Of a stretch of 64,000 nt of DNA, positions 1-10,971 are shown in pieces. Numbering within the stretch: the first letter of the stretch is position 1; each line of letters starts with the position of its first letter. This DNA comes from Dimorphilus gyrociliatus (lineage: Eukaryota; Animalia; Annelida): NCBI GenBank assembly GCA_904063045.1, contig CAJFCJ010000001.1, positions 1,302,001 to 1,366,000 of the forward strand. The letters are read 5' to 3'. The notes under the pieces were generated by a model, which did no database searches, was not told the origin of the DNA, and was given only the letters and a program-made list of their open reading frames with translations. Made by a program: the position numbers and the translations under genes.

Positions 1-186
1 ATCAAAGTTGACGGTCTCTTGTGGGGAGCCTCCAAATTGGTACCTGTTGGTTATGGTATCAGCAAGCTCCAAATTTCCTGCGTTATCGAAGACGATAAAG
101 TCAGCGTCGACGACCTTACAGATAAAATCACAGAAAACGAAGATTACGTTCAAAGCGTCGATATTGCTGCTTTCAACAAAGTTTAA
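1..186 (+). CDS. EEF1B: Elongation factor 1-beta/delta, C-terminal GEF domain (3' end; gene starts upstream of the window)
   Basis: Frame 1 reads [39 protein letters not shown]...[14 protein letters not shown], the diagnostic EF1B C-terminus. The track ORF 8..244 is a shadow frame. Beta versus delta paralog is not resolvable here. Confidence 0.95.
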
Positions 187-2777: not shown

Positions 2778-3263
2778 GTTTAGATTCTTATTAAATTAGT
2801 AGGGTATCTCTAAAAGAGTTCGACTGTGTCTGTTTTTGAATCGTGTAGCAGAATCATTCGATTTATTCCAACCTTCGAGTATATTTATTTGAATAAAACT
2901 TCCGGATAGTCATGTGGTATATCATGTGATCGAAAGGAAAGCGTTGACTATTTAACTTAGCTTTTAAAATACTTATTGAGAGCGAAACAAAATAATTTTG
3001 TTCTCTTTTTTTATCAAAATGTAATTTAAATATCTGGCAATATTAAGAAAAGCTATCAATGTTCTATAGCCAAGAAAAGAATCGAATTTGTATCTTTAAC
3101 AAGCTGAGAAGTTTTTACAGAAGCTTTTCTTTAACAACATATTTTATGTATCTTTGAAAACCAAATATAAAATCATCACTTTTTTTACTACCTAAAAAAA
3201 ATTACATTTATTACAATATAGACGAAAACAATGAAAATAAAGTAAATGAGGTCCCCGATTTCA

Positions 3264-3942
3264 TTATGAATTCATAGTAGATTGGGTTTGCATTTTTTGT
3301 TGCATGATCTTTCCATAACCTAAAAATAACAGCGATAATTGAAACAGCGTATTTTTTTGTGAAACTTAAGTATTTACCTCCTCTTCCGCTATCATAATCT
3401 GTACGATATTCGTCTCGAACTTGGCCACCCGATTTTCCCCTTCCATATTGTCTTCCTTCCTTGAAACCTGCATCCCAATCAGTTCTCACAACTCTTTCAT
3501 CCAATCGTGTGCCGTTAACATATCGCATAGCATTTTCAGAATCCTCTCTTGTATAATACTCAACAAAACAAAATCCACAAGGGGTTCGTCTAACCTTATC
3601 CAGGCCCATGATAATTCGTTTTACATCTCCACAACGAGAAAATAGTTCATGAATTTGTTCTTCAGTTGTGTAGAAGGAGAGGTTTCCAACATATAATGTA
3701 GTCGTTTGATTTAATAATCGATCCTGATCTTGGCGAGATCCCTGATTGAGCGATAATATGCGTGTTAAATAAATATATCGCTATTTAAGTTTAAATACTG
3801 ATTTAAATGAACATTATTAAGTAAATTATGAGTTGAATAACGAATAAAATTAAATTCTTACTTTAAAATGTTGGTCGCGATATTGTGAAACAGAGGATAC
3901 TTGATTATTGTTCAATCGCCTTCGTTTGGGAGCGGACGACAT
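3264..3942 (-). CDS. NCBP2: Nuclear cap-binding protein subunit 2 (CBP20), 3 exons
   Basis: SQYRDQHFK|[79 protein letters not shown] matches the CBP20 RRM. Confidence 0.97.
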
Positions 3943-4441: not shown

Positions 4442-7400
4442 TTATTGTACACGGCAGTCGGCATTTCCATCTCTGTCAACAGCAATTTGTAGCGTACGAG
4501 CCACTGCTTTGCACAAATACGACATAGTTCCGTATCTTCCACTAGGCGCCGAATCATAAAAATGTTGGCAAATTCCCGCTACACCTCCACATTTCAACGG
4601 GTTTTGGCTGAATTTTGCGCAACATAGCAACACATCGCCTTCCATATGCTGCTGTTCATCTATAAAAATTGAATTAGCTCTCATAACGATATTAGTTATA
4701 TTTATTATCTGATCCCAACGACTGTTCACAGCGCCGTACTCTGCCACGAGAGATAAAACTGTAAGAGTTTCAACAGCCAACTGTCTAAGCTCGGGTTGAG
4801 TTACTCTGTTCAATGCTGCTTCAACTTGGAGCGCGAATTTCAATTCTCCTCTTGTCATTTCTTTTGTAAGGGATCTTTGTAGACTTGTTTCTTCAATTTG
4901 CAATCCATTACACTAGTTGGAACAATAGTAATAAAAGTCACAAGAATTAAATCAATTTAATAAAAGTACTTTTTCCAAAACCAGCCAAACGTCTGCATAA
5001 AATCCAACTGGTACACGATTTAACGAACCATCTAGTCTCCTTCTCCTTAGCCACTGGCCTTGTCTATCTGAGTCGCTAAGATCAGCTCCAGGCCCTACCG
5101 ACTCTTGCAGTTCCTGTATTTGACAATAAAAAACATTTAAATTAATCTAATTACTACTAGGGCGAAGAGAAGAAAGAGGTTTCTATTTAGTCTAAATCAA
5201 AAATACGTTATATGCATACATATTATTATGTCAATAATTAATTACATAAAAATATCAATGAATAGATATATATATATATATATACATATATACATATACA
5301 TATATACTGTATATATCTACATATACAAATACCGTTTGTTCTTCAATAAGATACTGTATACATATGCATTTACATGTATATAAATATATATATATACATA
5401 TATAATAAACGAAAAGCGTACTGAAAGATTGTGAATGACGTGCCGGTGCTCAAGAAGTATATTTTGACGAAAATCTAGAAAGCAAAGAAAATAAAACAAA
5501 TGCACATAAAGTAGCTATGTGAGATTGAAAAGTGCATAAGAGAAAGAGTATGAGACAAGCTAAGGCATTAAAGCATCCCAAGACTTACCGCTACCATTGA
5601 CGATCGTCTACTGCGAACTTTAGTCGTTGTACGACTACCTTCTCTTATCATATCACCCGCCGATATAAAGACGTTTTCAGCAGCTTAAAGCGCATATTAA
5701 AATCGGATATCAACCAACAATTTTAAGAATTAATCTCTACCAATTAATTATTTTAGGCTAAGCTATTTGAATTATTATAAAATAGTATAGGCCTCATTAC
5801 AAGTACCCTGACCTGCTTGTTATTACAAGATATTTTGCAACGAGGGTATAAGTATTCTGGTCTATACGTTTAATACATGTTAATAGCAATAGAAGTAAAT
5901 AAAGAATCATTAACAGTGCGGAATTAGTTGAAATAATTTTTACACCTTATATAAACTTGTCTTTCTTGTCCTTATAGTGCTGTGTTTTGATCTAGGTTCG
6001 GCTGGAACGATTCTTAAACTCGATCCCGCGCTAGAACCTGACGTAGTTTATATGAAAGAAATGATTGAAAAGATTTAACTGTTTCTTCTAATATTTTCCG
6101 TTTTTTTAATAATATTTTTTTTCTAAAAAATAATCTTTGAAATTTGAATCTTTTGTCAAATTAAATATCAAATAAAGAAACGCTTTGTTAAAAATTCTAA
6201 TAGAATTAACCAGAGATGTGTGTTTTTTCTTTCCTCTTTGTTAAATGAATAAATAGAAAGTCAGGATTCTCTCATTATCGTTACTTAATAAACATTGCAG
6301 AACCCGAATTAAAATGGACAAGTCCAAAAATAGCTTACCGGACGTTATGCCAAATTCTTTGCCGCTAAGTATATGATGAAGTAATGTTTTCATTTCGTAA
6401 GGACTTAAATTCAATAGCTGGTCAGATGCGTCGTCTCCTATATATTTTTCGTATAATAAATTATATAAATTATTCATTGACAATTATGTACAAAATACCA
6501 AATTACCCGAACACTTTAATGTCCTAGCTAATTCGGATGCCATCACTTGAATAATTAAACCAATTCTTAACCTCAACATTTCATGAAATAATTTCGGTTC
6601 TGTTCTAATAAACATGGCTAGATAAACCAAAAGTTCCTGCGTTAACATGGCAATGGACAAATCTCGACCACAAGCCTCATGTATCATATCGGCCAATTCG
6701 TCAGGAGGCAGAGGGCGAGTTATAATTTTTTCCCTCGGTTCGGGAGGTAGACCAACAGCTAATTGTTTTTGTCTGACAAGAATATCAGTAGCTGATAAGG
6801 CTAAATTTTCCACTTTCTTCCTAAGCATACCAGCTGTGTGTCTAACTAGCCACCACTGCTTTAAATCTCCGGCTCGGTCATATAATTCCGCTAATAGATC
6901 TCTAACTTTACAACTTCTATTAGGACCTTCTAAATTCGTTTCCCAATTTACTCCCTTATGGAGATACAAGTAGTAAATAATATCAGCTTGCTCATGTAAA
7001 CTTTCGCTATCTCTCAATTGATCCACCAAATCTATACAATCAATACCTTCATATAAGCTTTCGTTGTGATGAGTTATAGCGGTTGTTCCAGCAAGAACAG
7101 CTTTTAAATGAGATTTAGGTTGAAATAGATCTCGTTCGGGTGGCGTAAATGTAAGAGGACTACAAGGTGGTGTCGGGGATACATTTTCTGACGATGGAGT
7201 CTCTGCAACAAAAATTAAATGAGCTATATGTTGAAAACATCTTAATAAGTCGAAATTATTCAAATTCTCTCATTAGTTTCACAGTGAAATTTATTGAAGT
7301 GCTCAAAGAGTTGAAGAAAAATTACGAAAAGGTGAATATAAATTGAAGTGATTATTATAAAAGTATGTATAAGATATAAACTAATACTAAATGAAATAGA

Positions 7401-10400
7401 TTATATCTCTGCATGCTTAAGCAATCACCTCCAAAATCCTGTGCACCTGTCGGAAGCAGGTGTGATAAGTCTGAAAAATAATAGTTTAAAAGAAATAATA
7501 AAAAAGTCTAAAAAAGAATTAATTTCCTTCGTAGAGTCTATTGTTGTATTGAAGAAGAAAATTATGTAACTTAAGTGATAATTGAAAGTGAGAACAACGT
7601 AATTATAAGAGGTAAGGGATAGGAAATAAATAGAAAAAGGCAATTCTAATTTCAATTATTGATTGGCTTATGAAAGTGATATAGGAAAAAAATTTGACTC
7701 TATTTACCTCCAACGTCTTCGGGAGCAATCTGGATTGAGAGACTCTTCTTTAGGAAACCGGAAACTGTACTCTTTCTTCTAGCTCTTGGCTTTTTGACTT
7801 GGGAACACTTTCGAGAAATTGAATCGAGTATGCGATACGTTGATTTGGCACTGCTAACTTGAAATGCTCCAATATATTCCAATAAATTATCAACTTTAAA
7901 GGAAAATATCGAAAAATAGATGTTAGAAAAATAACATAATTGATAAAATTCATAATATATAAATCGTACTATCTGGCGAATCGTCAGCTTCTGTTAAATA
8001 AGTTAAACAAGTTGCGCATGAGGTATTCATAAAATCTTGTATAAAACCAAGTTGAACTCTATAAACAAAGTATTACCATTAACTAAATAAAATAATAATA
8101 TAAATATATATTGAGTAAAATTCACCTTGTTCCATTTATATAACCTGTCTGCAGTTTTTTCATAGTAGCTATGAGGGCAGGATGTAGATTATTCTTGAAA
8201 TCTGTTGAAAAGTTTATACTTTTATATAAAAAACAATATACCGATCACACCAACCATACGCTATACGAAAACAAGGAACAATGAAAATAGGTCTCCCCAT
8301 ACCCATCCATGAGTTTTTCAAATATAAAAGATTATTTTTGAAACCATCTATTAGATATTCAATATCATGCACCATATAGAAGGTATCAGCATCAGAGAAC
8401 TGCAAAGCGTCAGAAACTCATTCAGAGGGAAAGGACAGGAGAAATATTTTATTTAAAATGGAACATAGAATGTATACCGAAGTTGATTAAAGAGGTTTGA
8501 TTGCATAAAAAAAGATGCAAATTAAGAGTTTCTTTTAGTATTAAGCCTAAATAACAATCCAAAGCTAAACGATCTCGAATAAACAAAACAAATATGCCAT
8601 CCATTAGGAAACTACTTAAGAAATGAAAGGATAGTCTAATATCTTATAACTTAATCATTTTCTATAAAGTTGATTAATGCCTATCCTTAATTTCCCAGTT
8701 TTTGATACAATATTACAGGTGAACATCAATCATAATTTACCCAATAATGACTGCTTGATTGGGAACACCATTAGAGGCCTCCCAATATTGTTCCAGTATC
8801 TTTGTAAGTGTTGAACGTCTGTTTTGAGCATATCCAGCAGTAGTTCCAGATCAAGAGGTAAGTAAAATTCTTGCTTATCTACAAACTTTTTTGAATTTTC
8901 GATCGATATATATATTTTGTAATCAACCTCGATATAGAAGAGAAAATCCTAGAAAAATCTTTTACCTGAGGCATAAACACTAGAGTCTTATCTCCCAAAG
9001 TATAGAGTTTACTAGTTGCTAAAATGCCTGCCATTTCAGTCGGTCTTCCAGTAAGACCCAATTTAGAATTCTTTCCTGTAAGTACATTTGTAAATTATAA
9101 ATCCTCTCTCGTGCTTGTATATTTACTTACCCAAATGAGAGAAAATATGGCTTAATACTTTTGCAGGATAAACTTGAACGGGTGAAGCTTCCGCTAATGT
9201 TTGAACCTTAATATCGTTTTCCGCCAGCTTTTCTTGAATCTTTTCATCTTCTGCCAGAATAACAACTACAAAGAAAACAAAAAAAAATTGATATTAAACT
9301 TTAAAGCTATGTAAATAAATATAAATAGATTACCTTGAACAACTAAATCAGGCTTTTGTTCTGTTACTAATCTCCTATTTAAAGGATCAATTTCACCAGG
9401 TGATAAAAATCCCTATTGGAAAAACATATATCAATATTATTAATTAAACTGCCAAAAAATAAGTGGTTTACCTCCATCAGTAACTTGCATAAAATATATA
9501 ATGATTGTCCCCAAGTTTGAGGAACTTTACCAATTGGCTCTCTGATTTGACTGCCTGGATTGTAGCATTCTTCCTCAACTTTATGTGCTGGCACTCGGTA
9601 CATTTCGGGCATTAATTTTATACCATCCTCTCCTTTGATCATTAAACTTTCCAGTATTGTCATATATTTTTCAATATCAGCCTTAGTATCGTTAAAAATT
9701 GCATCCAATACAAAGAATGCAATAAATAAAGGCCATTCGCATTCGATATTCTCAAACATACTTAATTCCCACGGTTCGTAGTGTAATCTGTTAGGATCTT
9801 CTCTGGCTGTCTTGTATCCATCTCTAATGAATCTACAACATCCATATTCGCCCTAATATCGATATGCAAAAGTGAAAATAAATCGTAAATTGAACCAAAA
9901 TAATAAACAACTAGTACCATTAATTTATCAACAATAGTATTTTTCGTTAATTGTATTAAATCTTGATCATCAACCGCGAAAGCAGGATAGCTAATTATTC
10001 CCATAAGTGCGGCGTCGACCTCTTTCGAATTAGATTCTCGAGGTAAAACTGATTGAAGAATAGCTTGACATTGCTGGGCTTCATCTGGTAAAACGTGTAT
10101 GACGGAATAGGGTCCACCTCTAGCTCCGAACAGGTCTAGTTCATTCATAGCTTCTAGAGCAGCCTTCGCCATACCTATGGAGGTTGTATTCAATTCTGGT
10201 AGACCGTGGTTTGTCTTATCTCCCCTTTCCCAAATACCATAATCCTAATAAAAAATATTTGTGTTCCTAAATACTATTTCATTAAATGGTATGAAGGGAA
10301 TATTTACAGGAGTTCTATAGGCCGATTGAATATAAAATACTAAATTTTGAATGAAGGAGACTTCATCCATCGTGTATATAATTTGTAAACCGGAAGCAGT

Positions 10401-10971
10401 CATTTGAGCCAAAATTAACAAGTAGAAGGAAGTGGCATCGATTTGAAGATGACCCCAACCATCGTCGCTCACAACTGTAGCCCCAGTTGTAACGCTATAT
10501 TTTGCATGGAGAGCATCTTTTGGAGATTGTCTGTTATATGTATTGTTCAATGTAGGTTTTAAATAGACTCATTAGTAATAGCCTTACGTATATTTAAATT
10601 TTTCAACTTTATTCATTTGTCTCATCATACATGTCAAGAGGCCTCTCATTAATTTTACAACGCTTTGCTCTAATTCATAAGCTTTAGCTCTATCCTCGTC
10701 CAAATCTGCGTTCTTCTTATAAGCTAACGCCAAACCCCAAACAGCTAGAATCGAATACACATTGTCTCTAACCCACGCATGATCGTGAAAAGAATGCTTT
10801 GGATCGGCTGTTGCTGGAAGCAGACCCGTCACCGGATTCTACGGGTAAAAATCTTACTTAATTCTAAAATATCAAACGTCGTCTGTTTTTTACCTGGTGT
10901 TTTAAAATGGTTTTGTAGACCATTCGTTGATAAAAATCAAGTCGTACTCCTGAATTACTGCGTGACCTCAT
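4442..10971 (-). CDS. PHKA: Phosphorylase b kinase regulatory subunit alpha, multi-exon
   Basis: Starts [15 protein letters not shown]. Contains [25 protein letters not shown] and [13 protein letters not shown]. Ends in the CaaX box CRVQ*, as in farnesylated PHKA1/2. Confidence 0.97.
8255..8399 (-). other. PHKA: PHKA variable exon B (145 nt, phase 0 to 1), homologous to exon A
   Basis: TTTGCAG|[48 protein letters not shown]+G|GTTGGT. Same length and phases as exon A. Confidence 0.85.
8741..8885 (-). other. PHKA: PHKA variable exon A (145 nt, phase 0 to 1)
   Basis: AAG|[48 protein letters not shown]+G|GTAAAT. Confidence 0.85.

Follow-up and report, generated by a model that had tools for sequence, protein, structure and literature searches.

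One gene for the regulatory subunit alpha of phosphorylase b kinase (PHKA) in the annelid Dimorphilus gyrociliatus carries two neighbouring, homologous exons of 145 nucleotides (nt), here called A and B, of which a readable message can hold exactly one. Phosphorylase kinase is a textbook enzyme, and both vertebrate gene duplicates and cassette exons are known to give rise to isoforms of its alpha subunit. Our analysis covers a 64,000-nt stretch of contig CAJFCJ010000001.1 (assembly GCA_904063045.1, positions 1,302,001 to 1,366,000 of the forward strand; hereafter, the window), within which all positions are counted. Taken as a whole, our reading is that A and B form a functional, mutually exclusive pair, with exclusivity enforced by the reading frame, a choice biased by a duplex between introns, a function in restraining the kinase, and a cluster position common to molluscs and an insect; we give this reading a probability of about 0.8. 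Each PHKA message would then take either A or B, yielding two forms of the alpha subunit whose sole difference is in the 48 residues corresponding to human PHKA1 524-571.

Two homologous exons in one PHKA gene

The gene lies on the minus strand of the window. Residues 1-1191 of a mollusc PHKA (P0207) are matched in order from position 10971 to 4448 by local tblastn, exon pieces of the gene match the glucoamylase-like N-terminal domain (Pfam PF00723), and the closest relatives of the gene carry the name PHKA. Exon A corresponds, along its entire length, to human PHKA1 524-571 (E 1.3e-8) and is more distant from the human beta subunit (E 2e-4). The Pfam domain, the collinear mollusc match and the greater closeness of exon A to human alpha than to human beta together identify the gene, at the level of sequence, as PHKA. 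Its C-terminal exon has a paralogue that is 39% identical, on contig C9 (2238969-2239454, plus strand), which from this similarity we take to be PHKB.

For comparison we used the PHKA locus of a related lineage (hereafter L010), which lies on a 43-kb public contig from run SRR23372228. It was found by the long C-terminal exon, whose protein is 95% identical in the two, and it shows approximately 77% nucleotide identity over the whole PHKA gene. In the window, PHKA is flanked by frames at 19-186 (plus strand) and 3211-3609 (minus strand) whose translations read as resembling the C terminus of elongation factor 1-beta and a cap-binding-protein-20-like RNA-binding domain, respectively. An elongation factor 1-beta gene also follows PHKA in the contig of the relative (L010:12171-12684, Pfam PF00736), so gene order seems to have been kept. 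A simple TA-rich stretch lies inside a PHKA intron at 5287-5325.

The initial annotation, made from the letters of the window alone, had described two consecutive 145-nt exons running from phase 0 to phase 1 between AG and GT ends, and reading of the minus strand bears this out: each exon consists of 48 codons plus 1 nt (Table 1). The gap-free alignment it had claimed for the two translations is likewise recovered by BLASTP, with 15 of 43 residues identical (35%; E 2e-11). It had also matched each exon to the same segment of human PHKA; this stands for exon A and fails for exon B, which has no match to PHKA1 at E<10 and hits the equivalent place in the paralogous human PHKB (residues 581-619; E 1e-4). 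Among invertebrates, exon B does find its match in that segment of many PHKA proteins. A search of its frame against proteins of 35-110 amino acids, in a collection that seemingly lacks the proteins of this genome itself, gave no match. In a search of the species' own genome (77.9 Mb, 349 contigs), A and B were the only copies of this exon.

Table 1 Features of the PHKA exon pair and their comparison with the related locus L010 (dS and dN from Nei-Gojobori counts, window versus L010)
Feature	Position in window	Strand	Length, ends and remarks	Nucleotide identity to L010	Residues identical to L010	dS	dN
PHKA gene (phosphorylase b kinase regulatory subunit alpha)	10971-4448 (approximate coding span)	minus	assigned by collinear tblastn				
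Constitutive upstream exon	9075-8966	minus	phase 0 end, residues ...MPQ	87%		0.83	0.012
Intron preceding exon A		minus	80 nt; carries duplex arm 1	66%			
Duplex arm 1 (predicted)	8936-8920	minus	in intron before exon A; within conserved island 8920-8939 (20 nt)				
Exon A	8885-8741	minus	145 nt; AG at 8887-8886 before, GTAAAT after; FYLPLD motif as in mollusc A-type	88%	47/48	1.10	0.009
A-B intron	8740-8400	minus	341 nt, GT-AG ends	65%			
Duplex arm 2 (predicted)	8489-8473	minus	73 nt before exon B; within conserved island 8473-8491 (19 nt)				
Exon B	8399-8255	minus	145 nt; pyrimidine-rich tract and CAG before, GTTGGT after	97% (5 differences/145 nt)	47/48	0.16	0.009
Intron 3′ of exon B	8254-8202	minus	53 nt	62%			
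Constitutive downstream exon	8201-8125	minus	phase 1 start	88%	25/25		

Judged by the criteria set out for mutually exclusive exons that arise from tandem exon duplication (PMC3228551), A and B are homologous neighbours of similar length and equal phase, with valid splice sites. The junction residues of the constitutive exons on either side agree with those of mollusc PHKA. Splicing of A to B reads GTT CTC TGA, placing a stop at the third codon of B, as expected from the frame break that had been predicted for joint inclusion; when both exons are skipped, ten codons of the downstream exon are read before the eleventh, which is a stop. Because messages with both exons and messages with neither run into an early stop, a readable message contains exactly one of A and B. 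The reading frame would thereby enforce exclusivity at the least, with messages of either other kind probably degraded through their early stops.

Two splice sites of the pair look weak, the exon-B donor (GTTGGT) and the A-rich acceptor of exon A. Later GT donors for exon B were considered and rejected: the resulting exons, 149 or 151 nt long, are out of phase or not kept in L010, which leaves 8255 as the sole conserved, in-phase end. We also rejected two general causes of exclusivity, namely a steric block or distant branch point, given an A-B intron of 341 nt with many AG dinucleotides, and an incompatibility of U2 and U12 sites, given that all sites are GT-AG and lack the U12 donor consensus. 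With an intron of this length and ordinary GT-AG ends, neither steric block nor U2/U12 mismatch explains the exclusivity.

Constraint on the exons and predicted pairing between their introns

Comparison with L010 shows that exons A and B are both under purifying selection. Each has kept 47 of its 48 residues, at a dN of 0.009, and the pair has lost none of its four splice sites, which bears out the long-term selection on both copies that had been proposed from their open frames. A single non-synonymous change in 116 sites, set against the intron mismatch rate of 0.32, has a probability of about 1e-18. The synonymous divergence of exon B is about sevenfold below that of exon A and three constitutive exons (dS 0.16 versus 0.83-1.38; Fisher P 4e-5). 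Possible causes of this low synonymous divergence include splicing signals and RNA pairing.

The best inverted repeat of the region joins the intron before exon A to the sequence upstream of exon B, pairing arm 1 with arm 2 (Table 1) through 17 contiguous RNA pairs, including two G-U pairs, with a predicted duplex energy of -19.9 kcal/mol. In the fold predicted for a 951-nt stretch, the helix belongs to the minimum-energy structure and its pairs have probabilities of 0.8-1.0. When the two introns were shuffled with their dinucleotides preserved, a contiguous helix of at least 17 pairs arose in 13 of 2000 shuffles (P 0.0065); run over the introns in full, duplexfold (ViennaRNA) gave no such distinction between real and shuffled sequence. 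Introns of the pair contain six islands of at least 12 nt that are perfectly conserved in L010, two of which coincide with the arms, and the chance of this coincidence is, as a rough estimate, about 0.002. Neither arm differs in sequence between the window and L010, in introns with approximately 65% identity, so there is no compensatory change between the two.

The remaining four islands all lie in the A-B intron (8740-8723, 8700-8678, 8588-8577 and 8427-8414). A search for their pairing partners returned none that is convincing, with island pairings of 7-9 bp at most, and no Rfam family reaches threshold over 8100-9100. The first of these islands lies directly 3′ of the exon-A donor. The last is located 15-28 nt before the exon-B acceptor, beside a conserved CTGAC that is a possible branch point.

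In the mechanism that we propose, the 17-bp duplex probably biases the choice between A and B by looping out exon A and bringing the upstream donor near exon B. Such an arrangement would resemble the docking site and selectors of Dscam exon 6, the pairing in ATE1 (PMC7797038) and the general model of such systems (PMC6071210), in which an element after a constitutive exon pairs upstream of a variable exon and loops out the exon between them. Unlike the systems of the Dscam and ATE1 type, the worm pair has a predicted pairing with no covariation, and a search for a second selector, as in one per variable exon, found none: the conserved pairing of arm 1 with arm 2 is the only one, which leaves no selectors to compete.

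These differences feed the strongest rival, in which the switch is real, the complementarity is coincidental, and the islands are protein-binding splicing elements or other regulatory elements. The identity of the arms in L010, with no compensatory change to report on pairing, fits this view, as do the four islands that lack a convincing partner, the single selector where classic docking-site systems have one per exon, and the result in the wasp Trichogramma, in which no significant equivalent helix was found (P 0.13). However, a helix of this length is rare in shuffles, its arms make up two of the six conserved islands, it dominates the predicted ensemble, and no Rfam family accounts for the islands. 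We regard coincidental pairing as a serious but less likely account than a duplex that biases the choice.

Homologous exon clusters in other animals

The same switch can be read directly from public protein records. In the wasp Trichogramma pretiosum, the RefSeq PHKA isoforms X1 and X2 (P0156 and P0155; 1211 amino acids each) differ solely at residues 524-571, and the locus (L007) carries both exons in tandem, each 148 nt long, with equal boundaries and phase. In the snail Biomphalaria, isoforms X18 and X19 are identical outside this segment, and oyster proteins of 1196 amino acids derived from short transcript contigs differ at the segment plus one to three single-residue (allelic) changes; homologous exons are thus mutually exclusive at the RNA level in Biomphalaria and oyster. 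Many mollusc isoforms were retrieved with a snail PHKA as query; sorted by this segment, they fall into recurrent A-like and B-like versions, and the oyster Magallana gigas has four versions. The four corresponding copies stand in tandem in its genome (L009:8649-12167), 0.9-1.5 kb apart, all of them used in RefSeq isoforms and with the B-type copy last.

The initial annotation had suggested comparison with PHKA loci of other spiralians and of ecdysozoans, and there the oyster (four copies), the snail Batillaria (two) and Trichogramma (two) indeed have tandem copies at the same position. Vertebrates and the sea star Patiria have a single copy there. Judging from these loci, a tandem exon cluster at one position is common to the worm, molluscs (two to four copies) and an insect (two), and not to the sea star. 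The initial annotation had known of no switch at this position of PHKA; one is annotated, however, in mollusc and insect entries of public protein databases, although we looked in the literature for a description of exclusive exons in PHKA and found none. With annotations already in place for snails, oysters and a wasp, the switch is real but no new kind of thing, and mutually exclusive tandem exons are a well-known class of mechanism.

The clusters differ in detail. The Trichogramma pair resembles that of the worm in gene, protein position, boundaries, phase and the presence of two tandem copies, whereas its exons are 148 rather than 145 nt long, the copy with the ‘FLKSSW’ signature comes first, and the introns hold no significant duplex. 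Mollusc clusters share with the worm the position, the use of 48-residue alternatives one at a time and the placement of the B-type copy last in the array, but have up to four copies (four in Magallana gigas, two in Batillaria and Biomphalaria), and their B-type clade is not clearly joined by worm exon B. Human PHKB has mutually exclusive exons 26 and 27. That switch is also between tandem-duplicated exons, in a paralogous subunit of the same enzyme complex, but it belongs to another subunit than the worm pair and lies at a more C-terminal position.

The kinship of the individual copies is only partly visible in so short a segment. Exon A scores 69.8 bits against a hidden Markov model of the mollusc A-type and 55.1 bits against the B-type, and exon B has about the same score against every group. 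The tree of the 48 columns is mostly unresolved; mollusc B-type exons form a well-supported clade, and worm exon B falls on a long branch outside any clear grouping. Approximately unbiased (AU) tests reject neither a clade of A and B (p 0.32), nor a grouping of B with the mollusc B-type (0.18), nor one of A with the mollusc A-type (0.23). Exon B is a fast-diverged copy in which the invariant residues of the family are retained.

These comparisons also bear on what exon B is for. It might be a ‘poison’ exon, spliced after A so that the early stop lowers PHKA output, with its conservation reflecting splicing control and not the protein that it encodes. The stop at the third codon of B when it follows A suits such a role, and so does the combination of 97% nucleotide identity and a dS of 0.16, a pattern that is also typical of conserved poison exons. 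Yet B keeps an open frame of 48 codons and all invariant residues of the family although it is only 35% identical to A, and the homologous copies in molluscs and the wasp serve as coding alternatives. A purely poisonous exon B is accordingly improbable; a dual role, as both coding alternative and poison exon, is compatible with the same data. That exon B is an unused relic or pseudo-exon of an old duplication, in a gene that makes the A form alone, is barely credible: B is the more diverged copy, on a long branch and with a weak donor, yet it differs from L010 at 5 of 145 nt and one residue between introns that are 32% mismatched (P about 3e-18), its splice sites are kept there, and the intron with its upstream region runs to 341 nt in a compact genome whose median intron is 66 nt (PMC7854359). 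With a dN of 0.009, a dS of 0.16 and a P of about 1e-18, exon B is therefore almost certainly no relic, and constraint acts on it at the protein level and at the RNA level alike.

The cluster seems to mislead gene predictors. The Batillaria attramentaria model KAK7498731.1 (L006:6025-8144) begins exactly at the second exon copy and is missing the N-terminal half of PHKA. In models from Elysia (P0208), Biomphalaria (P0210), Magallana (P0211) and Mytilus (P0270), two or three copies are strung together in series.

The exchanged segment and its probable role in restraint of the kinase

In the structure of the human complex, residues Lys588 and Tyr593 of the D2 domain of the alpha subunit (D2-alpha) bind the N-lobe of the kinase, and D2-alpha meets D2-beta and helps to hold the kinase inactive (PMC10978961). 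The segment exchanged between A and B probably belongs to D2-alpha, a placement that we infer from the neighbouring residues named in that study rather than from stated domain limits. As human residues 524-571 come shortly before Lys588 and Tyr593, the exchange of A for B would most likely tune how firmly the alpha subunit keeps the kinase inactive.

A wider account can be offered tentatively, and we hold it with much less confidence than the reading above. In this account the PHKA switch is old in lophotrochozoans, and perhaps in all protostomes, and rewrites part of D2-alpha to set the restraint on the kinase; in dinophilids the choice would be made by the long-range duplex, and the synonymous constraint on exon B would be part of the RNA control.

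One PHKA gene would thus offer two versions of a 48-residue segment placed shortly before the D2-alpha residues that contact the kinase, and the exact segment for biochemical swap tests is named. In a genome whose introns are very short, the conserved 17-bp duplex and the low synonymous change of exon B together provide a compact model, open to test, of how one exon is chosen; if true, it would make a clear annelid case of RNA-structure-guided exclusive splicing. A practical consequence is that the exon cluster breaks gene models. Together with the molluscs and the insect, which have two to four copies, the worm pair suggests that the tuning of glycogen breakdown by this route is widespread among invertebrates, a route that we have found described in no paper.
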